From positions 124,001 through 188,000 of IMG/VR virus record IMGVR_UViG_3300043446_004613: a stretch of DNA of 64,000 nt; one strand, 5' to 3'. Numbering within the stretch: position 1 is the first letter of the stretch; every line of letters starts with the position of its first letter. Of the stretch, positions 988 through 30,781 are shown one piece after another. The notes under the pieces were generated by a model. The model did no database searches and had not been told where the DNA came from. It saw only the letters and a program-made list of their open reading frames with translations. Position numbers and translations under genes: made by a program.

Positions 988-1635
988 GTGACTAAGAATC
1001 CGCATCTGAAGAAATTACTCGGCGAATCGGAACACGACGAGGTTCACCGCTACGCCGATGCTATGCAGCAAACGCCGCAGAACGGACGCGAAGCATACCC
1101 AGATCAGCCTGAGCTTGCCTCTGCGTTTGATCGGCTGCATTTGCAGGATAAGTCGTTGGACGAACTGCGCGACATGGTTGCCAATCAAGCGCTAAACGGC
1201 TTTGAGCTTGAGGTCGTAAACAACGAGATCGAGTTTTTGAGCGGACTCTCTGAAAATCTCGAAGATCAGCAGAATATGCCCGCACGTCCAAAAGACGAGA
1301 CGCAGGACGACACGCCGATCAAGCCGAAAAGTAACAAGGCGGCCAGCTTCGGAAACGTCAACGTGGAACTGGCTCCGAGCGTGCGGGAATTGATCGGTCT
1401 TTGGAAGCGCGGCGAGCACATGGCAGTTGCCGCCCGCTTGATGTTCACGCCAGCGAGCTATGTCGATTTCATTGCGTTATCTTTTACCATTGGTCAAGCT
1501 GGTGCAATGGAATTGGCTGGTTTACTGGATGAACTTTCAGATACCGAAAATATGCGACCGCCGTCCACCCCGCCAGAGTACAAAGAATTGCTTCAAAAAG
1601 TCGCAGGAGCAAACGCAGAGGAAAACGTTATATGA
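988..1635 (+). CDS. hypothetical protein, candidate internal head protein
   Basis: 215-aa ORF, N-terminal HLKKLLGE motif, overlaps next start. Confidence 0.6.
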   Translation: MTKNPHLKKLLGESEHDEVHRYADAMQQTPQNGREAYPDQPELASAFDRLHLQDKSLDELRDMVANQALNGFELEVVNNEIEFLSGLSENLEDQQNMPARPKDETQDDTPIKPKSNKAASFGNVNVELAPSVRELIGLWKRGEHMAVAARLMFTPASYVDFIALSFTIGQAGAMELAGLLDELSDTENMRPPSTPPEYKELLQKVAGANAEENVI

Positions 1636-2399
1636 GCAGCAACCCCCTTTTAGCCCGCGCCCTTGGTGAATCAACCGGCGATGTCGTGCCGGTTCTCGCC
1701 AATGTACCGCGCAGCACGCAACGCAGTCGTCTTGAGCGCCTGCGCCAGCGCCGTGATCCAGAAGGTATTGAATCCAAAAATGAAAGCCATCGGCGCGACA
1801 TCTCGCGCCTGATCGGTGAATCTGAAACCGATGAGCAGCAAAAGCGCAGCGATAGCGTTATCCCGGACGAAGCAGAGGAGATTGATAAGAGCGCCTACAC
1901 TGTAGGCAAGCCGATTGATCCGCCCAAGAAAGTCGTGCAGGAACCGTCGCATCCAACAGCTGATAAGGAGAAGTACATTACTCCGGCATCTGCTTTGACT
2001 GCTCCCGATGCGACACCGCAGGCCACGCAGCCGCTAGACGCTTCACAGGTACCGATGCCCGGCGCATCCGGGCCTCAGCGATTTAGCGCATCCGACCTTG
2101 AAAAAGCCCCGGCAGCCCCAGCAGCCGGAAAAACGACAGCTGAAATCGATCCGCTGTCTGTACTACTTGGTCATGGTCGGGTACCGCGCCCTGCGCCCGA
2201 AATGCAAACGTTCCAGCAGGCAGGCAACATCAGCACTGAAGAAGCCCAGCGCATGGTTGGCGTACAGCCGATGCTTGCCGAGGAGGCCAAATCTCGAGCA
2301 GCAGCGGCGCTTCAACAGGGCGGCGTACCGATGCCTGAACCGAGCGCGCCAACAGACGGAAAGCGCGTTTTGGAAGCTTTCCGTCGTTTTGTCGTATGA
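1632..2399 (+). CDS. Pro/Ala-rich hypothetical protein, candidate internal head protein
   Basis: 255 aa; LARALGE and ISRLIGE motifs; 4-nt (ATGA) overlaps with both neighbours. Confidence 0.6.
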   Translation: MSSNPLLARALGESTGDVVPVLANVPRSTQRSRLERLRQRRDPEGIESKNESHRRDISRLIGESETDEQQKRSDSVIPDEAEEIDKSAYTVGKPIDPPKKVVQEPSHPTADKEKYITPASALTAPDATPQATQPLDASQVPMPGASGPQRFSASDLEKAPAAPAAGKTTAEIDPLSVLLGHGRVPRPAPEMQTFQQAGNISTEEAQRMVGVQPMLAEEAKSRAAAALQQGGVPMPEPSAPTDGKRVLEAFRRFVV

Positions 2400-2911
2400 A
2401 AGCCGATGTCATCGCGTTTAAGCTGCTAGAGGCTGACGGCGAATACGTACCAGAAGGGTATGAGTTGCTGGACACGGTTGACGTTGGCGACTACACGCTG
2501 AAGCTGTGGCAGGGTGAAGGGCACGTTCGCGGCGTTGCCGTTAAATTTTACGAAATTAGCCTGAACGCTCACGGGCGCTCTTTTGCTCCTGAAGAGCAAA
2601 ATAAGAAGTTTGCGACAACGATGGCGATGCCTGCGCGTAGCGTTATGCGCGTTGTAGGTGAATGGATCAAACGCTACGGCGGTCTGTACATTGGTAGCTA
2701 TTCTCCGCGAAAGCTGGCTACATACCACCACATGTTTAAGCGCTATCTTCCCCAGCTGAAGGTCAGCGATCCGTTCGCTCCGTTCGATGAGTGCGAAGGT
2801 AAACCCGAGTATTTCACCGTAAACAGCATGCCATCAGCTTTAGAACGTGCGCTCGCTGAAGCAATAAAACGCTACGATGCGCAAGTTAAACGCGGGCAAG
2901 ATCAGCGATGA
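2396..2911 (+). CDS. hypothetical protein
   Basis: 171 aa, N-terminal VIAFKLLE motif; may continue by a 1-nt shift into 2877-3059. Confidence 0.6.
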   Translation: MKADVIAFKLLEADGEYVPEGYELLDTVDVGDYTLKLWQGEGHVRGVAVKFYEISLNAHGRSFAPEEQNKKFATTMAMPARSVMRVVGEWIKRYGGLYIGSYSPRKLATYHHMFKRYLPQLKVSDPFAPFDECEGKPEYFTVNSMPSALERALAEAIKRYDAQVKRGQDQR

Positions 2912-3059
2912 TAACCGTAACGAGTATGCGGAACAGATCGTTGAACAGGTTATCGTAGACTCTGACCTGCTTTCCACCGATGACGTTGAAACAATCGACA
3001 CGTTTAACCATGTTTTAGCCAAGCTGCTGGCGTATGCGTCAGGCAGTCCGGTAGCTTGA
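2877..3059 (+). CDS. short ORF, possibly the frameshifted C-terminus of 2396-2911
   Basis: 60-aa acidic helical-looking ORF overlapping the previous gene in the +1 frame. Confidence 0.3.
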   Translation: MRKLNAGKISDDNRNEYAEQIVEQVIVDSDLLSTDDVETIDTFNHVLAKLLAYASGSPVA

Positions 3060-3078
3060 CCTATAACCACTTAAATCC

Positions 3079-3369
3079 ATGTCTGATCTGCCATTACCCA
3101 ATCTCGGTGTGCCTGTTGTAAACAACGAGCTACACGTGCGCATACACCGCGAGATGTTTTCGGATTTCTTCACCATAATGCTGGATGACAATTCTAGCGA
3201 AGAGCTTGAAATTGAACCTCTTAGGGAATGGTTTAAGGTGCGTGGCGCGAACATGGATTCGATTGATAAGGTGCTCGACCATGTCTGGAATTTTGGTTAC
3301 GCGGAAGTCCTGATCTCCAACCCAAAAACACCTAAGCACCTGCGCCTTCCGCATGAGCCGGACATTTAG
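3079..3369 (+). CDS. hypothetical protein
   Basis: 96-aa ORF filling the gap before the protease gene. Confidence 0.55.
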   Translation: MSDLPLPNLGVPVVNNELHVRIHREMFSDFFTIMLDDNSSEELEIEPLREWFKVRGANMDSIDKVLDHVWNFGYAEVLISNPKTPKHLRLPHEPDI

Positions 3370-3483
3370 TAGACACCGGGCACCTGCAAGCCTCTGTAGA
3401 CGTAAGTGACGTAGCAAAAGTCTATTGGAAGTCCAATCGTATTAGGTGCGTTAAGCCAGTGTAAACGGTCGCTAGGGAGAAGT

Positions 3484-5178
3484 ATGCGTTGTTACGTACG
3501 CAGAATTTCTTGTATGCGACAATACCTTATTGAAGGCATAACGGGCGCGTTTCCGTTCATTGTGGATCGGAACAAAACTCCGGTAACGGAGAGTCGCCCC
3601 AACGGCGGTAGCTTCACCCGCATCCCCGGACGTTTCAGCGTTTGCGACTGTGTCAACGGCAACAATCGCCGTTACAGCAAGCGTGTCTGGGAAAAGAACC
3701 TCACTGAAGGCTCAGTCCTACAGGAGTCCATCAAGCGCAACGCTGCTTTCGGCCTCCTCGAACACCCCAAAGACGGTATTGTCACTCTTCTCTCTCCGAT
3801 TTCCCACCACGTTACCAAAGCAGAAATGGTTGAAACCCGCGATGCCTCCGGCAAGCCGGTTTATGAAGTCTGCGGCGAAATCGTCATTTTCAATACCGAT
3901 GAAGGCCGCAAGTTGACCGCTTTGATCGAAGGCGGCTACAACCCGCTCGTCTCCAGCCGTGGTTACGGCTCTCTGAACAAAGCCAGCGACGGTGTTGATG
4001 AAGTCGCTGAGGACTTTGTCTGCGAAGGTTGGGACGTGGTAATCAAGCCGAGCTTTGAGCAGGCTGAACTGACTCCGGCCCGCAGTACTTCTACGGCCAC
4101 TATGGCCACCCCCGTCGCTCCTAACCCGCAAGCTGAATCTAAACAGCCTGCGCCCGCTACAGTGACGGAAACCAAACAAAATTTGAAGGAGTCGACGCCT
4201 TCAACTGGTGCGGATAAACCGACCAGCGTAACCACAAACAAAAATAACACTATGGAACTGAACACATTGAAGTCGCAGATCGAGAGCCTCCGCTCCGCTG
4301 ATGCTGCGAAACCCAATCGGTTCGCTGAGTCCATGACGAAAGTCGAGGAACTGCACCAGCAGGTTGCTGAGTGGGCCGCTGCCGATCCCAAACGTTCTTG
4401 GGAAGCGCAGAAGCTCCACAAGTCCCTCGACTCCATCGGCGAAGGACTCACTGCGACCATTAACCGTCCCGCTGACACCGCTCGTAAGCTCAGCGAGAAC
4501 AACAACAAGCTGCTTCGCGTTATCGACGCCGTCGCCAAGACTGCCGTCACTTACAAGAAGAAGCTCGGCGAAGCCCTCAAATCCGACGGCAGCCGCGTCA
4601 AGATGATCGAAGAACTGACCCGTCGCGGTCAGGGCTGGCAGCGTATCGCCGAGAGCCGTAAGCAAAAGCTCATGGTTCAGGAAAAAGATTTCGATACCGC
4701 GTGCGAAGCGCTCGACATCATGGCCCAGCGCTATCACGAAGACGTGACCGAACTCGGTCGTCGCCTCATCGTCCTTGAATTCAAGGAGAAGGCCCAGACG
4801 CCTGAAATCCAGAAGTCGCTCAAAGAAGCGACCCGTCTGCGTCACATCGTTACCATCCGCGAACGGCTGGAAGGTAAAAAGAAACCCGTCTCTGAAACCT
4901 CTGCGGAAGGCAAGCAGCCCAAAGAAGGCGAGCAGCCTAGCCACGAAGGCATCAAGGACGAGAAGCAAAAGGGCGCTGGCAGCCCTGATGCTGGCAAGGT
5001 TGCTGAAGAACCCGGCAAGGTGAAAACCGAGTCGAAGGCTCCCGGCGACGCGGCCAAAAAGACTCAGACCGTTTCTGAGTCACAGGTGCTGAAGACGGAT
5101 CGCGCTGACATCAGTGTCCGCTCGGTCAATGAATCGGTGGAACTGGTGCGTCGGCTTAGCACCGCACCCGCCAAGTAA
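3484..5178 (+). CDS. prohead core protease (T4 gp21-like) fused to a coiled-coil scaffold region
   Basis: NGNNRRY, GLLEHP, VSSRGYGS and GWDVVIKPSF motifs of the gp21/U9 family, followed by about 300 aa of charged helical sequence; directly upstream of the MCP; likely start 3514. Confidence 0.88.
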   Translation: MRCYVRRISCMRQYLIEGITGAFPFIVDRNKTPVTESRPNGGSFTRIPGRFSVCDCVNGNNRRYSKRVWEKNLTEGSVLQESIKRNAAFGLLEHPKDGIVTLLSPISHHVTKAEMVETRDASGKPVYEVCGEIVIFNTDEGRKLTALIEGGYNPLVSSRGYGSLNKASDGVDEVAEDFVCEGWDVVIKPSFEQAELTPARSTSTATMATPVAPNPQAESKQPAPATVTETKQNLKESTPSTGADKPTSVTTNKNNTMELNTLKSQIESLRSADAAKPNRFAESMTKVEELHQQVAEWAAADPKRSWEAQKLHKSLDSIGEGLTATINRPADTARKLSENNNKLLRVIDAVAKTAVTYKKKLGEALKSDGSRVKMIEELTRRGQGWQRIAESRKQKLMVQEKDFDTACEALDIMAQRYHEDVTELGRRLIVLEFKEKAQTPEIQKSLKEATRLRHIVTIRERLEGKKKPVSETSAEGKQPKEGEQPSHEGIKDEKQKGAGSPDAGKVAEEPGKVKTESKAPGDAAKKTQTVSESQVLKTDRADISVRSVNESVELVRRLSTAPAK

Positions 5179-5215
5179 CAAGTAAGCCATCCAACAACAA
5201 AACTAACGAACTACT

Positions 5216-6679
5216 ATGGTAATTCTCACTGAAAGTGGAAGACCGGTATTGGCGTCTGATGGCGGGCACATCTCCCGTTTCATGGACGTCTTGGAGTGGG
5301 GCTATCGCCTCGCTGAAACATCGTTGGGCATCCCTGAAAAGAACTCACGCGGCCTTTGGGAAGCGCGGGGCTGGAAGGAATTTGTCCAACACATGCCTGA
5401 GCACAAGCGTCCTTTGGCCGCAATCATGCTCGAAAACTGCCGCAGCCGTTTTGGCCGCCTCGATGAAGTGACTCGTACCACGTCACTCGGCACGTTCGAT
5501 AAATGGATTTTCCCCATTATCGCCAACATGTCCGAGAACGACGTGATCGACCAGCTTGTCGCGCTCCAGCCGATGGCAGGCCCGGTGAGCCAGATCGTCT
5601 ACATGGACATCGTCACTGGCCGTCGCAAAGGCCGTACTCCCGCAGGTGCCCCGATGTGGCGTGCCTTGCAGGGCGCGGTTGACCGCGACGACGACGGCGA
5701 TGAAGTCGTTCAGGACGAAACCGGCACTGCGTCGAGCGGTGGCGTGTTCATCCTCGAATGGACGCCTATCCGTCCCGGTACCGTCACAGGTTCCTACAGC
5801 ACCGTGAACTTTGCTGACGACGGCAACGGTCAGATCATCAACGTAGCCACCAACGCCGCGATCGGTACAGTCGTGTACCAAGGCACTGGCGCTGGCACCG
5901 TGACGATCGCCGGGGCAGCCAACACGGACTACTCCGTGACCTACGCGTTCAATTCTGAAGGCAACCTCGCCATTCAGGATTACGAAATGAAGCTTTCCAG
6001 CACTCCGGTGACTGCGAAAGTGATGAAGCTCAAGACCCTGTGGTCTGAGGAAGCCGACCAGAACCTTCAGGCGATGTACAACATCAAGGCCGAAAGCGTT
6101 CTGCTCAACGCGCTCACCAACGCCCTCCAGTATCAGAAACACCGCCAAGTGATCTTCGATCTCCGCGCCAAAGCTGATGCCGGTTTCGTTGTCTGGGATG
6201 CGATCGCTCCGTCTGGTGTCAACTACCAGACCCACAAGTTCAGCATCATCGACGCGTTCGAGACTGCATCGAACTTCATCTACGGCGCTACGAACATGGT
6301 TGCCGGTAACTGGTTGCTGCTTGGCCTCCAAGCCGCTACCGTGGTTGCCACGCTGCCGCAGTTCGTGCCGAAGAACAACCGCGTGCAGATGCAGGGTATC
6401 ACCTACATCGGCGATCTTGGCAACAAGAAGGTCTTCGCTGACCCGCACTATCCGACTAACGAGTTCCTCGTCGGTCACAAGGGTGACCAGTTCCTGACCA
6501 CCGGCTACGTGTTGGCCGAATATCAGAAGCTGTACACCACCCCTGACGTGGTGCTGCCGGACTTCATCCATCAACGTGGCTTTGCGACGAGCTTCGCCCG
6601 GAAGATGGTTAACAGCAAGATGTACTGCCGTGGCCTCGTTCAGAATAGTCCAACGGCGTTCGGCCAAACGATTGGCTAA
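5216..6679 (+). CDS. major capsid protein (T4 gp23-like)
   Basis: DQLVALQPMAGPVSQIVYM motif, KLKTLWSEEADQNLQAMYNI segment, strongly biased codons, position after protease/scaffold, own terminator. Confidence 0.92.
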   Translation: MVILTESGRPVLASDGGHISRFMDVLEWGYRLAETSLGIPEKNSRGLWEARGWKEFVQHMPEHKRPLAAIMLENCRSRFGRLDEVTRTTSLGTFDKWIFPIIANMSENDVIDQLVALQPMAGPVSQIVYMDIVTGRRKGRTPAGAPMWRALQGAVDRDDDGDEVVQDETGTASSGGVFILEWTPIRPGTVTGSYSTVNFADDGNGQIINVATNAAIGTVVYQGTGAGTVTIAGAANTDYSVTYAFNSEGNLAIQDYEMKLSSTPVTAKVMKLKTLWSEEADQNLQAMYNIKAESVLLNALTNALQYQKHRQVIFDLRAKADAGFVVWDAIAPSGVNYQTHKFSIIDAFETASNFIYGATNMVAGNWLLLGLQAATVVATLPQFVPKNNRVQMQGITYIGDLGNKKVFADPHYPTNEFLVGHKGDQFLTTGYVLAEYQKLYTTPDVVLPDFIHQRGFATSFARKMVNSKMYCRGLVQNSPTAFGQTIG

Positions 6680-6698
6680 GAGTAAGCTGAAAATTCAT

Positions 6699-6884: not shown

Positions 6885-6890
6885 TACACC

Positions 6891-7268
6891 ATGCTATTTG
6901 AACCGACGGCCACCAACATCACCAAGCGCTACTTTGTAGACCGCGATGGCGTGCCGACATCCCGGATGCAGAACCGGCCCGGCATGGGCCACTTTGAGAT
7001 CGCGCAGTCTGTTGTAAATCTTGATCCGAATACTGATCTGTACCAGCAGATGTTTGCTTTGAAATACCTGCGCGTAGGCGAAGATGCGGCGAGCAATACG
7101 CTGTACGTCGACGCTCCTGTCAGCAGCGCGGATAAGCTCACTACGCGTCAACGGCGCTGGCTAAAGGACAAACAAGCGGAAGGCTGGAAAGTCGAGTTCA
7201 ACAATCGCTCGTTTGTTGAGGCCCGCGACACCCGCGCCACGCAGGTTGTAAAGCAGCTGCTCGGGTAG
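6891..7268 (+). CDS. hypothetical protein
   Basis: 125 aa, ends in ATQVVKQLLG motif. Confidence 0.6.
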   Translation: MLFEPTATNITKRYFVDRDGVPTSRMQNRPGMGHFEIAQSVVNLDPNTDLYQQMFALKYLRVGEDAASNTLYVDAPVSSADKLTTRQRRWLKDKQAEGWKVEFNNRSFVEARDTRATQVVKQLLG

Positions 7269-7275
7269 TTAGACT

Positions 7276-7518
7276 ATGCTGCATAAACGTGCCAATCAAA
7301 TCCGTACCCGGATCACGCAAATTGAACGTGAATTAGACAACGACCACGATGGTCAGCCTACCGCGCCGCTGACTCGCGAACTCGAAGACCTGCGTAACGA
7401 ACTCGCTTTCATTGAGGCCGACATCCCGCGTCGCACAAATGGTCGTTTTTTGGAAGGCCAGAACCCGCATAATACGACTCCTGCTGGGGCGCTGGTTTCC
7501 AAGATGCTTGATGCCTGA
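7276..7518 (+). CDS. hypothetical protein
   Basis: 80 aa, short coiled coil, ends GALVSKMLDA; GTAGTTA upstream. Confidence 0.55.
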   Translation: MLHKRANQIRTRITQIERELDNDHDGQPTAPLTRELEDLRNELAFIEADIPRRTNGRFLEGQNPHNTTPAGALVSKMLDA

Positions 7519-7523
7519 ATGAT

Positions 7524-8027
7524 ATGCTCTCCGCCGCTTTCATTGTAAACCGCCTGCTTGAAACCAGCGTCAATGACCATGTTCTGGTAAAAAGCAAAGG
7601 CTTGGTGCTGCTTAAAATGTCCATGATTGCGCAGTACTTGCTTGATAAGAATCGTTACCCTGATCTGCCTGAAGCTGCCGTGCAGGCTGAAATCAAAAGT
7701 GCCCGTTTGACGGCGGCTCAAGTCGACAACATTCTGGATGACGACGACGAAAAAGCGGAACGATCCGAAGCCAAAGCAGACGGTACAATCGATCAGTACT
7801 GGCAATCCAAGTGTGAAGATATTGCTGATAGCGTTGCTAACGACATTCGCAGAAGTGCCGGAATTAAAGAACCGACGTGGCAACAATGGAAGCAGGGCAA
7901 CGCTCACTATTTTAAGACTCCGTCCGGTGAAATCCTCACCGCGCAAACCGCAGAAGAGTACTGGGCAATTCAGGCCAGAATCGGAAAACAACGCGTTACT
8001 TTATGCTCTCCGCCGCTTTCATTGTAA
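7524..8027 (+). CDS. hypothetical protein
   Basis: 167 aa starting MLSAAFIVNRLLE. Confidence 0.6.
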   Translation: MLSAAFIVNRLLETSVNDHVLVKSKGLVLLKMSMIAQYLLDKNRYPDLPEAAVQAEIKSARLTAAQVDNILDDDDEKAERSEAKADGTIDQYWQSKCEDIADSVANDIRRSAGIKEPTWQQWKQGNAHYFKTPSGEILTAQTAEEYWAIQARIGKQRVTLCSPPLSL

Positions 8028-8042
8028 AGCGCCTGCTCGAAA
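7524..8042 (+). repeat. 40-bp direct repeat (7524-7563 and 8003-8042) encoding the N-termini of two adjacent genes
   Basis: atgctctccgccgctttcattgtaaa(c/g)cgcctgct(t/c)gaaa, 2 mismatches. Confidence 0.9.
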
Positions 8043-8500
8043 ACGACGATGATGACATCGGTCGCTATATCGACGCAGCAGCCCACCAGCTACGCTACGG
8101 CGCAAAGATGCTGGCAACACAACCGACATCTGCTGATCCTGTAACGTATACGCATTTTGATTGCTGGTCTGACACAGGCGACGACGAAGATGATGGCGGC
8201 GAAGTTTGGAACTGGGACAGCGATCAAGCCGTAGCTCAGGTAGGTGTGCTGTGCGACGAATGGGTGACCATACCCGGCGTTGATGCGGATAAAATTCGAC
8301 AGATACAGCGCAATTATCTAGCACTGGGTATCGAAGGGCCTGCCGACTATGGTTGTCCCGGACAGGCCGATGCGTTCAACGAGTTTGCTAAAGTTTTTAT
8401 TGAAGCTGGCTACAGTGTCTACCTAAGTGACAGCATGTTTGAAGTTTACGATCCCGAAGAATTATCGGAAGAGGACAACGTATCGGATGATGAGCTATGA
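8003..8500 (+). CDS. acidic hypothetical protein
   Basis: 165 aa starting MLSAAFIVKRLLE. Confidence 0.6.
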   Translation: MLSAAFIVKRLLENDDDDIGRYIDAAAHQLRYGAKMLATQPTSADPVTYTHFDCWSDTGDDEDDGGEVWNWDSDQAVAQVGVLCDEWVTIPGVDADKIRQIQRNYLALGIEGPADYGCPGQADAFNEFAKVFIEAGYSVYLSDSMFEVYDPEELSEEDNVSDDEL

Positions 8501-8904
8501 GCGGCTGCAACCAACCATCAGCTTTACCCGGAAGCCAGCGCACTGTTCCATGTGGAACAAGTGTAGACGGTCGCATCTTCCTATGCTCCAACTGCCACAT
8601 GAGCGAGTCCGGCCCGCGTAAAGCCAGCCGAATCGTAGAATCTCTCTTGGAGGATGAAGGTGAACTTAACGCGCAAAGCTACGTCGATGAATTACCTCGC
8701 ATCATCGACGACTGGCATGATCTTGCCGGTGATGACTGGATGGAATGGATGGAGATAGTGCGTGAGATCGATGGCGACCTGCCTGAAGAAGAACAGATGA
8801 CCAGCAAGGAAGCCGATCGGCTGGCTGGCCAGATTTATCGGGCGCACAACGGTGAACTACAGGCAGCGCGGGCAGCTTTTGGATTGGAAACCGGTGCCAG
8901 CTAA
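8497..8904 (+). CDS. hypothetical protein
   Basis: 135 aa, ATGA overlap with upstream gene, contains ASRIVESLLE. Confidence 0.55.
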   Translation: MSGCNQPSALPGSQRTVPCGTSVDGRIFLCSNCHMSESGPRKASRIVESLLEDEGELNAQSYVDELPRIIDDWHDLAGDDWMEWMEIVREIDGDLPEEEQMTSKEADRLAGQIYRAHNGELQAARAAFGLETGAS

Positions 8905-8938
8905 GCATGTGATTAGATCACGTGCTAGTAGTTAGAGC

Positions 8939-9157
8939 ATGAACGCTACAATTCGTAAAGTCATCGGCGAGATGCAAGAGCCGCACCCGGAAACGGATAT
9001 GTCTAACCCCGAGGAAAAGCGTGAGGTCGTGCTGGCCCGTAAGATCAAGCACTGCATTGGCGCACGTAAGGGCACCGCCGAAGATTACCGGGAAGCTCTC
9101 AAGCAGGCCGAGCGTTACGCTGACGAAATTATCACGATGCACGGACAGCAGCCTTGA
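8939..9157 (+). CDS. hypothetical protein
   Basis: 72 aa, TIRKVIGE N-terminus, GTAGTTA 4 nt upstream. Confidence 0.55.
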   Translation: MNATIRKVIGEMQEPHPETDMSNPEEKREVVLARKIKHCIGARKGTAEDYREALKQAERYADEIITMHGQQP

Positions 9158-9161
9158 TTCG

Positions 9162-9821
9162 ATGCCACAGTCCAAAGCCCATAGCGTAGTTTCGCACCTG
9201 CTTGAAGCGATGGAGGTTCGGCTGGACGGTTACGATTACCCGGTGGCTGTATACTTGATTGATCTGAAGGATAAGCAGACCGTCAAAAGCGGGTACGCTT
9301 ATTTCTCCCGGCCCTACCGTGACTGGCCGATCCCGGAGTCTTTCACGTACTTGATCGGCACAGAGAAACCTGCCCGGAAGTCCATCGCGATCCAAGCGAT
9401 TATCAACTTTGTAGACGGCCCGGCGACTGCTGCCAAGGTTACCGACGTGGACGAAGACTATAAGGCGTTTCTGCGTGACTATTACAAGCCATCGCAGCTG
9501 GACGACTACAAGTACTTTTCCAACTGTGCGCTGCAATGGGCGAAGCAGAACAAAATCATGCGTCCGGGGTACATAATGCAAGACGAACTGGACAGTTACA
9601 CGTACCCTATTCCAGAGCTACAGGCGCTTGTCAAATGGAGTTCTGACAACTGGCGCATGTCCGACCACTTTGGTTTGTTCCAAGGCAACTCTGGCGCTAC
9701 CCATGTCAGACTCACGCTCTACATCAGTGTAGACTACGCCGGTATACCGGACGAGCCGGATGCCGAAGCAGTCGAACGGTTGCTTCCTTACTTGGGGAAT
9801 GAAGGAGGGCGCAATGGCTGA
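9162..9821 (+). CDS. hypothetical protein
   Basis: in-frame ATG of ORF 9021-9821 just after the upstream stop; AHSVVSHLLE motif. Confidence 0.6.
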   Translation: MPQSKAHSVVSHLLEAMEVRLDGYDYPVAVYLIDLKDKQTVKSGYAYFSRPYRDWPIPESFTYLIGTEKPARKSIAIQAIINFVDGPATAAKVTDVDEDYKAFLRDYYKPSQLDDYKYFSNCALQWAKQNKIMRPGYIMQDELDSYTYPIPELQALVKWSSDNWRMSDHFGLFQGNSGATHVRLTLYISVDYAGIPDEPDAEAVERLLPYLGNEGGRNG

Positions 9822-10068
9822 ATTCACTCCTTGGCAGTTGACGCGCCGTCCCGAAGTAACCACACGAAAGAAAGAGGTTTTTGCGCGTGATCTCTACAAC
9901 TTTAGCGGACGCAGTGAGACGCAAGGCGCAAATAACCCGAAGGTAGGTATCCCAAGCATGGGGCCGCACGCTGCCGGGGCTATCCCGCCAACCAAGTATC
10001 CGACAGTAGTTGCCACCGAAGTTATCACCACCGGCACGCTGGGCACGGAATACGGAAACAATTTATGA
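9814..10068 (+). CDS. small hypothetical protein whose 3' end is duplicated at 11324-11404
   Basis: GGAGG SD before ATG 9814; the second copy differs only at synonymous sites, showing the frame is coding. Confidence 0.7.
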   Translation: MAEFTPWQLTRRPEVTTRKKEVFARDLYNFSGRSETQGANNPKVGIPSMGPHAAGAIPPTKYPTVVATEVITTGTLGTEYGNNL

Positions 10069-13836: not shown

Positions 13837-13886
13837 CACCAAAAAACATAAAACTAGAACTTTTTTGCGGGTAGTTAAAGTAGCGT

Positions 13887-14294
13887 ATGCCTGCAAAATC
13901 TGAAAAACAGCGTAAGTTCCTAAACTGGAAATTTGGCCACAAATGGGTCAAGAACCATCACTTTGACAATCCCGGCAAACTGCCGAAGAAAGTCAAAAAG
14001 GAAGAGGCTTTGACGGCCCGTGCTATGTTTGGTCGCCTACAAGAGCGCGACGACGCGCCAAGCTTGCCCTTGGGCAAAGCCGGTCATGCGTATTCGCGCA
14101 TGGATAAGAGCGACATTATGGAGCAGCCCGGCGGTACGTCCAAGAAGTGGCACAAAAGCGTCGCGTTGCGCAAAGAGGTGACCAACCAGCAGGACGTCAA
14201 AGGCTTTCCGAGCATGGACAAGGTCGGCAAGGTGCCGCACGCCATGAAGGAAGCACTGACGTCAGCGCAGGTTGTCAGCGCGATGCTGGACTAA
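13887..14294 (+). CDS. basic hypothetical protein
   Basis: MPAKSEKQRKF start seen in many phage proteins; ends SAQVVSAMLD; GTAGTTA upstream. Confidence 0.6.
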   Translation: MPAKSEKQRKFLNWKFGHKWVKNHHFDNPGKLPKKVKKEEALTARAMFGRLQERDDAPSLPLGKAGHAYSRMDKSDIMEQPGGTSKKWHKSVALRKEVTNQQDVKGFPSMDKVGKVPHAMKEALTSAQVVSAMLD

Positions 14295-14653: not shown

Positions 14654-14699
14654 GGTTTCAACGTATACGCATGTGTGTAGTTAGTCAACATTATATTTT

Positions 14700-19854: not shown

Positions 19855-19886
19855 ACTCTTCAAAGAACAGGATGTAGTTAATCCGA

Positions 19887-20663
19887 ATGATACTCGCGCA
19901 CGCTATTGTTGACGTACTGCTCGAAGCCAGCCAACCGTCGGCTGGTGACGCAAAAGGTGTCTATGTTTTTGGTCGAGGATTACCGGCAAGTGGTTATCCA
20001 GCGCCCACCTTTGAAAAGCTTATTGAGCAATTTCGCGAATACGGTTTCATCGACGCAAACGTAAAAGACAGCGCTAATTTGATGAGCCAGCTGGTAAAGA
20101 CCGGGTACACTTTTATATTTAAGCGCAGCCAGAACGACATTGAAGTGATTGGACGTATTCCAGTTGAAACGTCTGCTGCGAAATACGTAGAGCAGTATCT
20201 CGGAATGGAAGATAAAACAGTCGTTCAGTATCGGCGCGATGTGTTTGCTACGCCTACAAAGATGAGCGCTGAAAAGATTTTCTCCAAAGAGGAATCTCAA
20301 GGGATGAAGCCCCTCAACAGTTCAACGCGGATTGGCATCGGCTACGAGACGGCAAAAGAAGGCATCAAAATCGTCGAAGTCCATCAGAACGGCCCAGCAG
20401 CGCAAGCTGGTCTTAAAGCGGGGATGATTCTGACTTACGCTTGGATTGATTTTGGTCAAGGTCATGGTTCTGACTGGTACAAGCTAACCTCTGAGGAAAG
20501 CCTTGCAGTAGTGCTAAGCGCAGCCCAGCCCGGAAAACCGTTGATGCTCAAAATTCTTGTTGGAGGTACCTACCAAAATTTTCCGGTAATCCCTGTCGCA
20601 AACCAGCAGGGAGGCCCACAGAAACCGCCAGCAGCCGGTTCAACCTCCGGTTCTAAACCTTGA
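19887..20663 (+). CDS. PDZ-domain protein, candidate internal head protein
   Basis: RIGIGY...IKIVEVHQNGPAAQAGLKAGMIL is a PDZ signature; N-terminal AHAIVDVLLE. Confidence 0.65.
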   Translation: MILAHAIVDVLLEASQPSAGDAKGVYVFGRGLPASGYPAPTFEKLIEQFREYGFIDANVKDSANLMSQLVKTGYTFIFKRSQNDIEVIGRIPVETSAAKYVEQYLGMEDKTVVQYRRDVFATPTKMSAEKIFSKEESQGMKPLNSSTRIGIGYETAKEGIKIVEVHQNGPAAQAGLKAGMILTYAWIDFGQGHGSDWYKLTSEESLAVVLSAAQPGKPLMLKILVGGTYQNFPVIPVANQQGGPQKPPAAGSTSGSKP

Positions 20664-23892: not shown

Positions 23893-23903
23893 AATGTATA
23901 CAG

Positions 23904-24212: not shown

Positions 24213-24232
24213 TCTGCTAGAATAGTTACGGT

Positions 24233-24787: not shown

Positions 24788-25131
24788 TAATGGACGCGCT
24801 AAAGCGGACTATCGACCAGTCGATTAAGACACGACTGGCGAACCCAGCGCAACGTAAACAGGTTGTAGACACCGTGCTGGCAGGATTTGAGCATCTGCGT
24901 AAAAATCCAGTGCCCGATTTGCCCGAGCGCACGCAAAAACTACGCCAGCGCGTTGAAAAGCTGGCGCAGGAAGTAGCGGTAGAGTTTTCCGGTGATAAGC
25001 TCGTAGTTAAGGTGGCCGGGGCGTCAGAGTCGTTGTTGGTAGAGCTTAGACGCGGCACAAACTGGTATGCGCCGTGGGAAGAGATTGACGTGATTGTTCT
25101 GGCTGCGATATTAAAAGACCCAAGCAAGTAG
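24784..25131 (+). CDS. hypothetical (possible head-tail) protein
   Basis: 115 aa, ATGA coupled, ELRRGT motif. Confidence 0.5.
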   Translation: MIMDALKRTIDQSIKTRLANPAQRKQVVDTVLAGFEHLRKNPVPDLPERTQKLRQRVEKLAQEVAVEFSGDKLVVKVAGASESLLVELRRGTNWYAPWEEIDVIVLAAILKDPSK

Positions 25132-25140
25132 TTAAGTCAA

Positions 25141-25404
25141 ATGAAAGACCTCAAAAAGATCATTTCGGAATCCGTCGTGAACGGCGGCAAGAACTATGTG
25201 AGCGAAGCCGTGAACCAGATTCTCGGCGAAGACGTCTCTAGCGGCCAAACGGTCGCAGTTGTTGACGATCCGATCAGCGGTATGACCGGTGCCAAAGGCA
25301 AGGTCAAATCCATCAGCGACTCCAATCCCGGATTCGCGGACGTGGAGCTTGAAAACGGCACCACGGTGAAGATGCAGACTTCGCTGCTCGTTCCCGTCAA
25401 GTAA
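25141..25404 (+). CDS. small SH3/KOW-like protein, probably abundant
   Basis: GQTVAVV...GAKGKVKSI...ADVEL pattern; own upstream motif and terminator; biased codons. Confidence 0.55.
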   Translation: MKDLKKIISESVVNGGKNYVSEAVNQILGEDVSSGQTVAVVDDPISGMTGAKGKVKSISDSNPGFADVELENGTTVKMQTSLLVPVK

Positions 25405-25422
25405 CACCGTGAGTTATTTTGC

Positions 25423-25468
25423 CAGCGAGCACGGCGGCTAAAAAGGCTGCCGTGCTCGCTGTTTCTTT
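25423..25468 (+). terminator. Rho-independent terminator
   Basis: 16-bp stem cagcgagcacggcggc / gctgccgtgctcgctg followed by tttcttt. Confidence 0.8.
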
Positions 25469-25488
25469 ACAGACCCGTAATTAAGTGT

Positions 25489-26562
25489 GTGAACGTACCG
25501 AATTGGAAAGGTAACACGCTGAACACGCAGGCCGGTGCCTTGGCTGGCACCAGTATGCGTTATCATGAACTGGCGCTCCAACAGTGGCTGAACACAGTGT
25601 TCAAACTGCGCTGGGGCGTGCCGGTGCCTGTTGTATTCTCTACACCGATGGACGCGTTCAGCGCGTTCAACAAGCTCTGGGCCGAAAACGACAACGTGTT
25701 CAAATACCTGTTGGACGTAAAAGACGAGGAAGGCCGACCGGTGTATCAGCCGTATCCACAGCCGGTGCGCTACCCGATCATAAGTGTATACAGAAAAGGC
25801 TGGAAGCTGCGTCAGTCGCATAACTTCTCGATTCACCGGATGCGCTACATCAACTGGCCCACGGTCAGCAGCACCGGCTCAAGTGTATACGGGCGACCCG
25901 ATCAAGGTGATAACCTTACCCAGTGCAACATGGGTCACGTGACAACGAGCCGTTTTCCGATGGCTTTCGATTACCGTTTCCAGATCGATCATTTTTGTAA
26001 CCGCCCGGATACGCAGGCATTTTATATTTCGCAGCTGTTCCGCGAATTTTGGCGTACAGGAGGCCCGACGATGCAGACATGGATCGTCGTGAATTATCCC
26101 GGTTTAGGCTCAAAGCTTGTTCGACTTTATGTCGACGGTGAAATCCAGAACATGACGCCGGAAGAACCGGAAGATGGCAAGAGCGTTGAATTTCGCACCA
26201 GTTTCACCGTCGTGCTGGAAGGTTACGATATTGACCTCGATTATCAGATTTATCCGACGCTATGGAAACTGGTGCTGCGCAGCGGAAGCGTTGATCCGGC
26301 GGCACTGACTGACGCGTTTAACGCACTAACCATAGACATGCGCGAACAGCCGGATAATAGCGTCGTAAACTATCGCAGCAAGATGGGTGCGATGCCACCT
26401 GAAGGCGATTGCCCGCAAAAACTGCGTGACGCTCGCTTGGAGCGCGAGCAGGTACAGGTTACCGTGCTTGAAGCATTACAGGTTACAACGCAAGGGCCTT
26501 CCGGTTATCCGCCAGCAGCCGGAGTTACCGCTTTCGGTACTGCTTCACTAGCTTCAGTGTAA
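25489..26562 (+). CDS. tail terminator/completion protein (gp15-like)
   Basis: position before the sheath; PMAFDYRFQID and FRTSFTVVLEG segments resemble gp15-type folds. Confidence 0.55.
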   Translation: MNVPNWKGNTLNTQAGALAGTSMRYHELALQQWLNTVFKLRWGVPVPVVFSTPMDAFSAFNKLWAENDNVFKYLLDVKDEEGRPVYQPYPQPVRYPIISVYRKGWKLRQSHNFSIHRMRYINWPTVSSTGSSVYGRPDQGDNLTQCNMGHVTTSRFPMAFDYRFQIDHFCNRPDTQAFYISQLFREFWRTGGPTMQTWIVVNYPGLGSKLVRLYVDGEIQNMTPEEPEDGKSVEFRTSFTVVLEGYDIDLDYQIYPTLWKLVLRSGSVDPAALTDAFNALTIDMREQPDNSVVNYRSKMGAMPPEGDCPQKLRDARLEREQVQVTVLEALQVTTQGPSGYPPAAGVTAFGTASLASV

Positions 26563-26670
26563 ACACCCGCGAGTACGTGGCGTTGCGTTAAGTGCGCTGA
26601 ATGATACTGGTAGTTAAAAGTGTGAGCGCGGTTTTAATAGATTAGCGCGTAGTTAAGACAGCAAAAGATT

Positions 26671-28968: not shown

Positions 28969-28972
28969 TCTT

Positions 28973-29614
28973 ATGTCAAAGATGAACTTCAACAATACGT
29001 TCGGCGCTATTTCAGACGCCAACGCTATTGACCTGCAACGCAGCGACCTGTGGAAAGTGGACATTGTCTTGCCACAGGTGCTGAACGCGAACTGGAACGA
29101 CAACGTGCAGTTCTTGCTCGAAAAGTTTCCGTTCCCGACCCGCGAACGCGAAATGATCGAGGTCAAGTACATGCAGCAGACCAACTTCATTATCGGGAAG
29201 GACACTCCGACAAACGCCATCGAAATTCCCGTCCGCTACGCTTTCGGTGTCAAAGTCGTCGAAGCGCTCGAAAAATGGAATTGGCTCGTTGCCAACCCGA
29301 TCACAGGTGGTATCGGTCTGACCTCGCAATGCAAAGCCAAAGGCAGCATGCGCTGGGTTGTACCGAACATGCAGAACCAAGTGAACGCCCTGAGCAACAA
29401 CGTTGCTGCCGGGGAGAACACGATGGACGACGGCTTGGTTTACAACCTTGAGGGCTGCATCATCAAAGGACTCAAATACTCAGATGCTGACATGACGCAG
29501 AGCGGTTATGTGAACATCATGTTCAATCTCCAGATCGATCGCTACTATCCGGCTGGCAAGTCTCGCAACGGCGCTCTGGATGACACAATCGTCAATCCTG
29601 TTGTTGCGCGGTGA
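28973..29614 (+). CDS. tail tube protein (gp19-like)
   Basis: directly after the sheath; FPTREREMIEV and YSDADM..VNIMFNLQID tube pattern. Confidence 0.8.
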   Translation: MSKMNFNNTFGAISDANAIDLQRSDLWKVDIVLPQVLNANWNDNVQFLLEKFPFPTREREMIEVKYMQQTNFIIGKDTPTNAIEIPVRYAFGVKVVEALEKWNWLVANPITGGIGLTSQCKAKGSMRWVVPNMQNQVNALSNNVAAGENTMDDGLVYNLEGCIIKGLKYSDADMTQSGYVNIMFNLQIDRYYPAGKSRNGALDDTIVNPVVAR

Positions 29615-30012
29615 AAATTGACGTATACAGCGAAGCGGTACTTCGGGTGCTCCCCGAAGTACCTGATCTCCCTCTGGAGGCACCGCCTGCGGAGGGCTTC
29701 GATCTTGTCGATGTCTGCATCTGTCCGGCCTGCGGCGGCCAAGACGCCGCTGTGAAGAAAGTGGAGGATGCGGAAGTTGCTAAATGCCCACAGTGCCAGT
29801 GTGAATTCTCGCCACGCTTGGAAGCTGTATCGGCGCAAGTCATTCGCCGTATTGGTGAGCACCGTGCCCGGCGCATGAGCCGCTTCCTTGAGTCATTGCC
29901 GTTGAATCCACCGCCGGGTGTAAATCCAAAAGATTACTCACTTTTCCGTAAAATCGTCGATACTGAGCCTTTGGCTGTTGAAAACCCTGAATCCGAACTT
30001 GAAAATGAATAA
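29611..30012 (+). CDS. zinc-ribbon protein
   Basis: CPACG...CPQCQ pairs. Confidence 0.55.
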   Translation: MKIDVYSEAVLRVLPEVPDLPLEAPPAEGFDLVDVCICPACGGQDAAVKKVEDAEVAKCPQCQCEFSPRLEAVSAQVIRRIGEHRARRMSRFLESLPLNPPPGVNPKDYSLFRKIVDTEPLAVENPESELENE

Positions 30013-30781
30013 ACTTATCGAAGCTGCTGTTGTTGAACCGCAGTACAGCAAAACAGAGCGTGAATTTGATCCTCGTCATCTCATGAGCAAGCTAGATGCT
30101 ATACATCGCCGCTTTGTAGATGAGCGCGTAGCTGGCTTTACGACTCCTGAAGGTGTCACTCACCCACCCTGTTCACGTGAAGAGGCTGAAGCTCGTTGGG
30201 CTAAAGCGGAGCAGGCCTTTATGAACGCGCTTTCAGGAAACGTTGCACCTGAGCACCGTGAAAACAGTAAAAGTTTGCAGCATAAGCTGGGACTTACCCG
30301 GCCTAAGTTAACAGGCGCGATTTACCGCGATGATCCAACCGTTCCAGACACGGAACCAGAAACTGACTGGGAAAGCTACGAAAAATCGTGGCATAAGCAG
30401 GAAAGTAACGTGAGCGCTGTCGTGCGTACGCTTGTAACCGAAGCGATCGATATGCCTACGCCCGAGTGGGAAATAGATAAACATTTTTTTGATCAGGCAC
30501 TGCACAGTATCCGCAGCCGCTTTGTAGATGAGCGCGTATCTGGTTTTATGACGCCTGACGGTGTCAAACATCCGCCGGTTTCGCGTGAAGAGGCGGAAGC
30601 TCGTTGGGCTAAAGCAGAGAATGTTTTCAAAAAAGCGCTTATGAATCCATCGCCAAAAGCGGCGAAAAGCTTGAAACTTGGACGTAAACTCAGCCCGTAC
30701 GAGCGCGGCATGCGCGATGAGCCTTCGCTACGTCGCGGCGAGTCAAAATCCAGTTCTATCGTGCGGAAGATGATTTCTTGA
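30005..30781 (+). CDS. internal-repeat hypothetical protein
   Basis: two copies of RFVDERVxGFxTPxGVxHPPxSREEAEARWAKAE. Confidence 0.65.
   Translation: MNKLIEAAVVEPQYSKTEREFDPRHLMSKLDAIHRRFVDERVAGFTTPEGVTHPPCSREEAEARWAKAEQAFMNALSGNVAPEHRENSKSLQHKLGLTRPKLTGAIYRDDPTVPDTEPETDWESYEKSWHKQESNVSAVVRTLVTEAIDMPTPEWEIDKHFFDQALHSIRSRFVDERVSGFMTPDGVKHPPVSREEAEARWAKAENVFKKALMNPSPKAAKSLKLGRKLSPYERGMRDEPSLRRGESKSSSIVRKMIS
30110..30618 (+). repeat. about 100-bp intragenic direct repeat (30110-30210 and 30518-30618)
   Basis: same-frame repeat, period 408 nt. Confidence 0.85.

Follow-up and report, generated by a model that had tools for sequence, protein, structure and literature searches.

The internal proteins IPI-III and Alt of phage T4 are diverse and share only a capsid-targeting sequence (CTS) (PMC3012670, PMC8442874), an amphipathic stretch of about 10 residues, published as MKTYQEFIAE (PMC8442874), which lies at residues 1-12, ends in Glu and is removed by the gp21 prohead protease. 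In giant phages of the phiKZ/SPN3US type, many internal head proteins are processed after Glu by a gp21-related protease, and their propeptides, mostly longer than 100 residues, are thought to target the proteins to the prohead (PMC5694885). In phage P1, a myovirus that injects anti-defence proteins, an N-terminal segment of DarB is sufficient to direct a reporter into the capsid (PMC9024508). Encapsulin cargo-loading peptides, short terminal peptides on flexible linkers, load diverse cargo into an HK97-fold shell; the same motif is known at C-termini and, for ferredoxin cargo, at N-termini (PMC8346489). Scaffolding proteins of phages such as P22 bind the coat protein through C-terminal helices. 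Within this context, an uncultured 211-kb jumbo phage is of interest, because about one in ten of its proteins, otherwise unrelated to each other, carry the same ten-residue motif, mostly at their very start or very end. The window analysed here is a stretch of 64,000 nucleotides of this phage (IMG/VR record IMGVR_UViG_3300043446_004613, positions 124,001 to 188,000).

A terminal motif on unrelated proteins

The first-pass annotation of the window described an amphipathic motif in about 18 unrelated small proteins between positions 988 and 30781, at N-termini, C-termini and internally, and proposed that it is a capsid-targeting and cleavage signal marking a large cargo of packaged, injected proteins. 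The observation is confirmed and is stronger than was initially stated. All 20 strings listed are present in the window at the stated places. Nine are strong matches (14-26 bits; nt 7236, 7483, 7533, 8012, 8623, 9177, 14262, 19896 and 30749) to a profile built from the genome's own instances, A-x-x-[IV]-V-x-x-L-L-E, one is intermediate (IAFKLLE, nt 2411, 8 bits), and ten are weak (under 5 bits). Six of the weak strings (HLKKLLGE, LARALGE, ISRLIGE, TIRKVIGE, AVNQILGE and SAQVIRRIGE) form a second class, hydrophobic-x-x-hydrophobic-hydrophobic-G-E, which is itself enriched in this genome (15 hits against 3.9 +/- 1.8 in shuffles) and is concentrated in head-module proteins, whereas AHRLVDMLD, NALVQLLE, LKKIISE and SAVVRTLVTE are at chance level. 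The initial count of 18 mixes two motif classes.

The regular expression [AS]..[ILV][ILV]..[LMI][LIM][EDGS] gives 23 hits in 285 predicted proteins, against 2.4 +/- 1.4 in 200 residue shuffles, and a six-frame profile scan of the 211-kb genome gives 29 hits at 14 bits or more, against 1 in reversed-string controls. The motif is genome-wide and not confined to 988-30781. About 16 copies start at residues 1-10, 7 end 0-6 residues from the stop, and about 6 are internal. Carriers share no other similarity, as blastp after masking of the tag finds no pair at E<1e-3, and synonymous codons are used freely (third-position identity 35%). It is therefore a peptide-level signal and not a DNA repeat. PHROG profiles of carrier families align only after the tag (phrog_6246 from residue 33, phrog_36523 from residue 19), and orthologues gain or lose the tag, for example in the HAD-like family.

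The same kind of N-terminal tag was found in three whole relatives (G001, G002 and G003), so that four whole genomes, including the present one (G000), each have 13-22 N-terminal tags against about 3.5 expected. Each has its own consensus: AxxIVxxLLE in G000 and G001 (G001 adds xGPDE[VL]xP[KR]xY), MSRARxILEAE[ST]P[RK] in G002 (18 hits against 1.5 expected) and I[IL]xHLLEDD in G003. Orthologous proteins carry the consensus of their own genome, while codons vary, which points to one co-evolving receptor.

Glu follows LL in 30 of 34 N-terminal tags but in only 4 of 12 C-terminal tags (p = 6e-4), i.e., it is nearly invariant only where a downstream protein would have to be released. Two upstream elements were also distinguished: GTAGTTA precedes the portal, sheath, fibre-like and other large virion genes, whereas GTTCTT[AT] precedes the DNA polymerase, helicases and SbcC/SbcD-like genes. 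The first element is present at 27 of 111 tagged genes against 98 of 1030 untagged genes (OR 3.1, p = 2e-5), and the second at 2 of 111 against 85 of 1030 (p = 0.013). However, three quarters of tagged genes lack the virion-type element, and in G002 the association is absent. An equal frequency of the motif in replication proteins had been named beforehand as evidence against a packaging role; no recognised replication protein carries the motif, so that this test is passed, and no recognised replication or major structural protein scores above 7 bits.

Head genes and tag carriers in the window

The genes concerned, all on the plus strand, are as follows.

988..1635 (+), head-module protein, upstream of the protease as T4 gp67/gp68 are upstream of gene 21, with the N-terminal second-class tag HLKKLLGE (nt 1003-1026); orthologues in G001, G002 and G003 all begin with hydrophobic-x-x-x-hydrophobic-L-G-E; GTAGTTA lies 4 nt upstream.
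1632..2399 (+), second head-module protein with LARALGE (nt 1650-1670) and ISRLIGE (nt 1800-1820), which are probable protease sites; orthologues share the N-terminal pattern and the C-terminal GDGKRxxEAFR motif.
2396..2911 (+), head-module gene found only in this genome (no homologue in G001-G003), with the intermediate N-terminal tag VIAFKLLE (nt 2411-2431; profile score 8.0).
3514..5178 (+), prohead protease (T4 gp21 type) fused to a ~285-residue helical, scaffold-like C-terminal half, a candidate receptor and the candidate processing enzyme; Peptidase_S77 (Pfam, 1.1e-17), phrog_207 head maturation protease, PDB 5JBL T4 prohead protease (4e-15); His84 and Ser147 lie in the conserved LEHP and VSSRG blocks that align to T4 gp21 and are invariant in 25 relatives; the C-terminal ESVxLVRRLS motif is conserved across the clade while the preceding linker is not; the N-terminus MRQYLIEG is conserved.
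5216..6679 (+), major capsid protein (gp23 type; Pfam Gp23, 2e-30); the true start is at 5216, as the N-terminal 22 residues upstream of the initial gene call are conserved in about 55 relatives; the conserved N-terminal stretch ends in [VI]-L-E-W-G, a possible maturation site with the same hydrophobic-L-E as the tags, and E27 is nearly invariant.
6891..7268 (+), 125-aa carrier with the C-terminal tag ATQVVKQLLG (nt 7236-7265; 19.5 bits), which ends at the stop; first gene of a variable island after the capsid gene, which is replaced by other genes in L007; no homologue in G001-G003.
7276..7518 (+), 80-aa carrier with the C-terminal tag AGALVSKMLD-A (nt 7483-7512; 18.4 bits); GTAGTTA 4 nt upstream.
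7524..8027 (+), 167-aa carrier with the N-terminal tag MLSAAFIVNRLLE (nt 7533-7562; 26.1 bits); a single-sequence AlphaFold model puts residues 4-17 in a helix followed by a coil at 18-24, at low confidence.
8003..8500 (+), 165-aa carrier with the N-terminal tag MLSAAFIVKRLLE (nt 8012-8041; 25.5 bits); its first 45 nt match those of gene 7524 at 40/45, but the next 120 nt match at only 29%, which points to recent copying of the tag alone.
8599..8904 (+), 101-aa carrier with ASRIVESLLE (nt 8623-8652; 21.6 bits); the start codon is uncertain, and with a start at 8497 the protein would be 135 aa with the tag at residue 44.
8939..9157 (+), 72-aa protein with the N-terminal second-class pattern TIRKVIGE (nt 8948-8971); GTAGTTA 4 nt upstream.
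9162..9821 (+), 219-aa carrier with the N-terminal tag MPQSKAHSVVSHLLE (nt 9177-9206; 25.0 bits); the ATG lies 5 codons upstream of the tag.
13887..14294 (+), 135-aa carrier with the C-terminal tag SAQVVSAMLD (nt 14262-14291; 18.3 bits); the tag is kept in orthologues from L007, L008, L009, L019/L020, L027 and L028 and in most of nine database homologues (clear in eight, degenerate in P0008), while the rest is 35-57% identical; V130 and L134 are invariant, and the family ends in Q, A, D, L or N; two database homologues (P0006, P0010) carry precomputed PF11450.
19887..20663 (+), 258-aa carrier with the N-terminal tag MILAHAIVDVLLE (nt 19896-19925; 24.1 bits) and a PDZ-like C-terminal domain (PDZ_2, 1e-5, below the Pfam cut-off); syntenic orthologues in G001 and G002 are 26-29% identical overall, but M1, A4, L12, E13 and A14 are invariant; the model puts residues 2-14 in a helix followed by a coil, at low confidence; GTAGTTA 6 nt upstream.
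25141..25404 (+), 87-aa protein with the second-class pattern AVNQILGE (nt 25207-25230); GTAGTTA 6 nt upstream; tblastn matches in G001 (70% identity) and G003 (45%).
29978..30781 (+), 267-aa protein in the tail module with a weak C-terminal match, SSSIVRKMIS (nt 30749-30778; 14.5 bits); membership is doubtful, and its tblastn match in G001 covers residues 164-237 and does not reach a C-terminal tag.

The proteins encoded just upstream of the protease (where T4 has genes 67 and 68), the protease itself and the capsid protein all have N-terminal hydrophobic-hydrophobic-(G)-E sites, as their T4 counterparts do. Some carriers look like effectors. These include a protein with a ParE-like toxin domain and a 450-aa lysozyme-domain protein, which has no homologue in the three relatives and is thus unlikely to be the clade's endolysin. 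In G001, carriers with a NUDIX-like box and a HAD DxDGT motif were recognised by eye, and the G000 orthologue of the NUDIX carrier matches NUDIX PHROGs.

A putative capsid address and its alternatives

The interpretation offered by the first-pass annotation is partly supported, as the T4-type head machinery that it invoked is present, whereas packaging and injection are inferred from sequence alone. The reading favoured here, with moderate confidence, is that the motif is a modular address tag working at the protein level, a two-to-three-turn amphipathic helix (A-x-x-[IV]-V-x-x-L-L) that is usually joined by an acidic, proline-rich linker to otherwise unrelated small proteins and is read by one common receptor. 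In this view, the most likely receptor is the T4-type prohead core, i.e., the protease-scaffold fusion and its neighbouring head-module proteins, or the inner face of the gp23-type shell, and tagged proteins would be loaded into the procapsid during assembly. In N-terminal tags the helix ends in hydrophobic-L-E, which fits the Glu-specific gp21-type protease; that protease would clip the tag and leave the mature protein inside the head, to be delivered with the DNA, whereas C-terminal tags would load the protein without being removed. The analysis itself establishes that the tag exists, is modular and terminal, is under peptide-level selection, evolves in concert within each genome and is associated with the upstream element of virion genes, while the identity of the receptor, the cleavage, the packaging and the injection remain inferences.

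Several findings weigh against this reading or limit it. A complex prediction of the capsid protein, the scaffold half and one carrier, the only one made, returned an ipSAE of 0.00, which is neither support nor refutation. No cultured member of the clade is known (the best cultured capsid match is 29%), carriers are not basic, and in G001 they are more acidic than the background. Many tagged genes sit in arrays of small accessory genes, which in other phages are often early genes. Moreover, a C-terminal carboxylate could replace the Glu side chain in a pure binding motif, and the Glu asymmetry therefore does not prove cleavage.

The main alternative, which is possible but less likely, is that the tag is a short linear motif docking many accessory proteins onto a hub that is not the capsid, either a host protein or a phage-built intracellular structure, in which case the resemblance to the T4 CTS would be only that of any amphipathic helix. 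Placement at either terminus on a flexible linker is typical of hub-binding motifs, and genome-specific consensus sequences fit co-evolution with any single partner, including a host protein that differs between hosts (G+C is 52, 53, 60 and 57% in the four genomes). The acidic or neutral carriers, some of them enzyme-like proteins that would work in the cytoplasm, and the arrays of small accessory genes also fit this view. However, no candidate hub was found, neither the Glu asymmetry nor the sharing of the virion-type upstream element is predicted by it, and the same pattern occurs on head-module proteins and at the N-terminus of the protease.

A degradation or processing signal, read by a host AAA+ protease or the phage protease to limit the lifetime of accessory proteins without any packaging, appears improbable. 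Degrons are short, transferable and act from either terminus, and the hydrophobic-L-E ending fits a Glu-specific protease, but it is hard to see why about 10% of the proteome, including proteins conserved across the clade, would be marked for destruction; the association with late-type elements does not fit a clearance signal for early proteins, and genome-specific consensus sequences are unexpected for a conserved host protease. It is still less likely that the tag takes the proteins to the inner membrane, as MinD- or FtsA-type amphipathic helices at a terminus do, because the helix is short, ends in Glu and is followed by acidic residues rather than the basic flanks that favour anionic lipids, and the near-invariant Ala, Val and Leu positions point to a specific protein pocket. 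Although half of the initially listed strings are at or near chance level, an artefact of chance, composition, a repeated DNA element read through in frame or a paralogous family is refuted by the shuffled and reversed controls, the free synonymous codons, the unrelated flanks, the lack of residual similarity between carriers and the conservation of the tag in orthologues and database homologues.

Comparison with described targeting signals

The tag resembles T4 N-termini read from NC_000866 (Alt, MELITELFDE; gp24, MAKINELLRE) and the published CTS in its length, amphipathic character, final Glu and N-terminal position on otherwise unrelated proteins. As in T4, a gp21-type protease and a gp23-type shell are present, and carrier gene sets differ greatly between relatives. 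Nonetheless, the register differs (hydrophobic-hydrophobic-E here, hydrophobic-hydrophobic-x-E in T4), and the carriers are not basic, as T4 internal proteins are. With about 25-30 carriers per genome rather than a handful, the putative cargo is far more numerous than in T4, packaging and cleavage being inferred here. A quarter of the tags are C-terminal and some are internal, which has no counterpart in the T4 CTS, and the consensus drifts between related genomes.

With respect to coat-binding helices of scaffolding proteins, the protease-scaffold of this clade ends in the conserved amphipathic motif ESVxLVRRLS, whose hydrophobic spacing is partly like that of the tag, but it differs at positions 8-9 (S-x instead of L-E) and its profile score is low, and any mimicry is only a conjecture. 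The phiKZ/SPN3US-type propeptides have an A/S-x-E site and no shared short tag (PMC5694885), whereas the tag described here is 10-24 residues long and stereotyped. The encapsulin peptide has an unrelated consensus (TVGSL/GSLKRS type), binds the shell protein directly and is not cleaved, whereas here the receptor is only inferred and a putative protease site is embedded in the tag. Finally, the P1 DarB signal is 10-30 residues long, with no consensus shared among the Dar proteins (PMC9024508), whereas here the consensus is shared by dozens of proteins.

Distribution and modularity of the terminal motif

The genome under study (G000) is a single virus contig of 211,113 bp with 52.4% G+C, for which a rough gene call gives 285 genes; the window covers bases 124001-188000 of this contig. 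Megablast of the head genes against cultured phages found no match, and tblastn found only 25-30% identity to cultured phages, the capsid protein being at most about 29% identical to theirs. However, IMG/VR holds 67 related loci with capsid identities of 60-96%, several of them from contigs of 200-240 kb, and three of these were retrieved whole, namely G001 (199 kb), G002 (203 kb) and G003 (238 kb). Roughly 15 near-complete genomes of the clade are present in IMG/VR.

The observation made in the first-pass annotation, i.e., that a short amphipathic motif recurs in small unrelated proteins, is confirmed, and every string listed there is present. Nine of these strings are strong, one is intermediate and ten are weak. 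Six of the weak strings follow a second pattern, hydrophobic-x-x-hydrophobic-hydrophobic-G-E, which is itself enriched in this genome (15 hits against 3.9 +/- 1.8) and is concentrated in the proteins encoded just upstream of the protease. For the main motif, a strict regular expression for the core, [AS]..[ILV][ILV]..[LMI][LIM][EDGS], hits 23 times in the proteome, against 2.4 +/- 1.4 in 200 shuffles. A position matrix built from these hits (consensus AxxIVxxLLE) and run over all six frames gives 29 hits at 14 bits or more, against 1 when the translated strings are reversed. The hits are spread over the genome rather than confined to the interval 988-30781 first noted, and they are strikingly terminal: about 16 begin at residues 1-10, 7 end 0-6 residues before the stop and about 6 are internal. 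It should be noted that one "internal" case becomes N-terminal if a GTG start preceded by the element GTAGTTA is used.

Selection acts on the peptide rather than on the DNA. All four Ala codons and all Leu codons are used, third-position identity among copies is 35% and the flanks are unrelated, which rules out a DNA-level repeat. A paralogous family was likewise rejected, as no two carriers match by blastp at E<1e-3 after masking the tag. Pfam and PHROG hits among the carriers are heterogeneous, comprising a ParE-like toxin domain, a 450-residue protein with a C-terminal phage-lysozyme domain, DUF5661, a PDZ-like domain and, mostly, nothing; where a PHROG profile matches, it aligns only after the tag. 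The ParE-like domain (PF24732, 5e-13) is combined with an N-terminal tag in a 116-aa protein (locus L069, 9532-9882, minus strand; genome 29532-29882). N-terminal copies are followed by an acidic, proline-rich linker, and low-confidence structure models of two carriers (pLDDT 60-62) say only that the tag is a helix followed by a coil. An ESM Atlas search with the tag region gave no lead, all scores being under 0.4. A literature search for DUF3008 returned nothing, and no paper describing this motif was found.

The modularity of the tag is also apparent in the region that follows the capsid gene, where two neighbouring carriers share little more than their tags:

7524-7568 and 8003-8047: 5' ends, encoding the tag, of two adjacent, otherwise unrelated genes, identical at 40 of 45 nucleotides
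6891-10068: hypervariable island formed by the nine small genes after the capsid gene

Beyond the first 45 nucleotides, genes 7524 and 8003 diverge to 29% identity, which suggests that the tag alone has recently been copied, by recombination or gene conversion at the tag-coding stretch. The island is absent or replaced in the closest relative (L007, capsid 96% identical) and has no tblastn match in G001-G003, except for its last gene (9814-10068), which matches in G001 and partly in L007.

Genome-specific variants of the tag in related phages

Two carriers illustrate the conservation of the tag within protein families:

13887-14294: carrier with a C-terminal tag
19887-20663: PDZ-like carrier with an N-terminal tag

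The C-terminal tag of the first protein is kept in orthologues from six further loci and in most of nine database homologues (clear in eight, degenerate in one, P0008), although the rest of the protein is only 35-57% identical. The PDZ-like protein has syntenic orthologues in G001 and G002 that are 26-29% identical overall, in which Met1, Ala4, Leu12, Glu13 and Ala14 are invariant. G001 as a whole has 31 profile hits against 1 in the control. Of these, 27 are at residues 3-6, and they often extend to LLE-x-G-P-D-E-[VL]-x-P-[KR]-x-Y-[LV].

Initial profile and DNA-pattern scans suggested that relatives G002-G005 lack the tag; however, this was an artefact of building the profile from one genome. 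A relaxed pattern restricted to the first ~20 residues, together with a comparison of orthologues, revealed genome-specific variants.

N-terminal hits of the relaxed pattern in four whole genomes, with the expectation taken from interior density
G000: 19 hits, 3.4 expected
G001: 22 hits, 3.8 expected
G002: 13 hits, 3.2 expected
G003: 21 hits, 3.3 expected

Each genome has its own consensus: G002 uses MSRARxILEAE[ST]P[RK] (18 hits against 1.5 expected, with varying codons), whereas G003 uses I-[IL]-x-H-L-L-E-D-D. Orthologous proteins carry the consensus of the genome in which they sit, and such concerted change across unrelated proteins is what co-evolution with a single receptor predicts. In a small sample of loci from distant relatives, with 27-31% capsid identity, no N-terminal enrichment was seen. 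Several very large proteins of G000 (725-1367 aa; genome 24625-28728, 30606-33503, 43755-46400 and 48768-50945, loci L069 and L070) have no PHROG match at all, although two of them are conserved in all three relatives.

Association with the head module and with upstream elements

The phage encodes head proteins of the T4 type, and the following features of the window are relevant in this respect:

988-3369: genes just upstream of the protease gene, as genes 67 and 68 are in T4
3514-5178: T4 gp21-type (Peptidase S77) protease fused to a helical, scaffold-like half
5125-5178: conserved C-terminal motif of the protease-scaffold fusion, [IL]-[NST]-E-S-[VI]-x-[LM]-[VA]-[RK]-R-L-S
5216-6679: gp23-type major capsid protein
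53612-55585: portal
45-980 and 42333-44051, and 2091-3569 of locus L074: glycosyltransferase-like and methyltransferase-like genes flanking the head module (weak hits), which may modify DNA or the virion
38063-39232: 389-aa protein of the baseplate module with a Peptidase_M23 domain

The assignments rest on Pfam PF03420 (1.1e-17) and PDB 5JBL (4e-15) for the protease and on PF07068 (2e-30) for the capsid protein. His84 and Ser147 of the protease, in the LEHP and VSSRG blocks that align to T4 gp21, are invariant in 25 relatives. The C-terminal motif of the fusion is conserved across the whole clade, even at about 41% protease-domain identity, whereas the preceding linker is hypervariable; it may be a coat-binding tail. 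The idea that the tag mimics this scaffold C-terminus (ESVxLVRRLS) was considered, but the similarity is too weak to claim. The M23 protein is a likely tail-associated cell-wall hydrolase and was the only one found in searches for other cell-wall hydrolases; no SLT, Amidase_2 or M15_4 domain was detected, and these searches did not identify the endolysin.

Products of the genes between 988 and 3369 begin with hydrophobic-x-x-x-hydrophobic-L-G-E in all four genomes, the protease begins MRQYLIE-G and the capsid protein has a conserved N-terminal [VI]-L-E-W-G. T4 N-termini read directly from NC_000866 have the same character (Alt MELITELFDE, gp24 MAKINELLRE, gp21 MNEPQLLIE, gp22 MLKEQLIAE), and the published capsid-targeting sequence is MKTYQEFIAE (PMC8442874). 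T4 internal proteins are described as diverse proteins that share only this sequence (PMC3012670).

When a regular expression that does not fix the residue after L-L was used, Glu followed in 30 of 34 N-terminal tags but in only 4 of 12 C-terminal tags (p = 6e-4). This fits Glu being needed where a downstream protein must be released, although a free C-terminal carboxylate standing in for the Glu side chain is an alternative reading. N-terminal tags end in L-L-E, where P3 = L and P1 = E, which agrees with the L/I-x-E context of gp21 cleavage sites; however, the register is one residue shorter than in T4 N-termini.

The clade has almost no Shine-Dalgarno sequences (30 of 285 predicted genes), and the host is probably from a lineage that makes little use of them. 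Instead, there are two conserved elements a few bases upstream of start codons. GTAGTTA[AG] lies 4-15 nt upstream of about 45 start codons, including those of the portal, sheath, fibre-like and other large virion genes and of the first head-module gene; it is 20-36-fold enriched upstream of genes, is conserved in G001-G003 and could be a late-type promoter giving nearly leaderless mRNAs, or a translation signal. GTTCTT[AT] lies 6-10 nt upstream of replication and repair genes (DNA polymerase, helicases, DnaB, SbcC and SbcD-like genes). Between SbcC and gene 19887, the two elements sit back to back in a divergent arrangement.

977-983, 7265-7271, 8928-8934, 13871-13877, 14677-14683, 19874-19880, 26649-26655, 46751-46757, 53597-53603 and 56695-56701: GTAGTTA[AG] (about 35 more in the genome)
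19864-19870 (minus strand), 52367-52373 (minus strand), 53567-53573 (minus strand) and 61314-61320 (plus strand): GTTCTT[AT] (also genome-wide before the DNA polymerase, helicase and DnaB genes)

Upstream elements of tagged and untagged genes, pooled over the four genomes
GTAGTTA (virion type): tagged 27/111, untagged 98/1030; OR 3.1, p = 2e-5
GTTCTT[AT] (replication type): tagged 2/111, untagged 85/1030; p = 0.013

An equal frequency of the motif in replication proteins had been named beforehand as an outcome that would argue against a packaging signal; no recognised replication or major structural protein contains the motif.

Interpretation and comparison with known targeting peptides

It is highly likely that the motif is a genuine, modular terminal address tag read by one receptor. 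The existence of the tag, its terminal position, its modularity, the selection on the peptide, its concerted change within each genome and its association with the upstream element of virion genes are established by the sequence comparisons, whereas the identity of the receptor, removal of the tag by the prohead protease, packaging into the prohead and delivery with the DNA are inferred. The best-supported specific mechanism is T4-like capsid targeting with protease clipping of the N-terminal copies, which appears about as likely as not. In this sense, the interpretation of the first-pass annotation, which regarded the motif as a capsid-targeting and cleavage signal, is partly supported. The capsid reading at present rests on sequence and not on virion evidence, and several points weaken it. 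Carriers are not basic, unlike the small, highly basic T4 internal proteins that travel with the DNA: the median pI of the predicted mature parts is 7.7, 5.2, 6.0 and 6.9 in the four genomes, which is not above the background and in G001 is significantly lower. Three quarters of tagged genes lack the virion-type element, and G002 shows no association. A single complex prediction that combined the capsid protein, the scaffold half and the carrier at 13887-14294 returned no answer in either direction (ipSAE 0.00).

The main rival, which is less likely but not excluded, is that the tag is not a capsid signal at all but a hub-binding motif. In this view, it could be the visible half of a phage-wide addressing system, in which about 25-30 accessory proteins per genome, tagged at either end, are recruited to one still unidentified hub, such as a phage-built compartment or complex, or a host protein, and the consensus of the tag co-evolves with that hub in each lineage.

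If the tag is a capsid-loading signal, the sequence alone gives a catalogue of the proteins that these uncultured 200-240-kb phages would deliver with their DNA. There are about 25-30 of these per genome, the sets differ almost completely between relatives, and they include toxin-like, lysozyme, NUDIX-like, HAD-like and PDZ-like proteins. This makes the open question of how giant phages choose their internal cargo directly testable with a 10-residue peptide, and the genome-specific consensus sequences offer a natural covariation experiment for finding the receptor. From a practical point of view, a short tag that loads foreign proteins from either end would be a useful handle for phage-based protein delivery in laboratory systems.

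In comparison with known systems, the tag shares with the T4 capsid-targeting sequence the gp21- and gp23-type head proteins, the terminal Glu (in the N-terminal copies) and the presence on otherwise unrelated proteins. A T4-type capsid-targeting sequence is necessary and sufficient to put a protein into the prohead and is removed by the prohead protease during maturation, properties that are inferred for the present tag only by analogy. The extreme N-terminal position of the T4 sequence, a short peptide of about 10-20 residues, is found for about 16 of 29 copies in G000 and 27 of 31 in G001, but not for the 7 C-terminal and about 6 internal copies in G000, which are foreign to the T4 sequence. 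Encapsulin targeting peptides, in contrast, work from either end of their cargo (PMC8346489), and the tag resembles them in being a terminal peptide on a flexible linker, found at both termini; nonetheless, its consensus, AxxIVxxLLE, is not of the encapsulin TVGSL / GSLKRS type (PMC8346489). Encapsulin-type peptides bind a pocket on the inner face of the HK97-fold shell protein; for the present tag, the complex prediction with the capsid protein present gave no answer on such binding. Use of both termini would extend the T4 concept towards the encapsulin mode of loading. Although the capsid-targeting sequence itself is already known, the tag is an unusual version of this idea in the number of its carriers, in its use of both termini and in a consensus that differs between related genomes.
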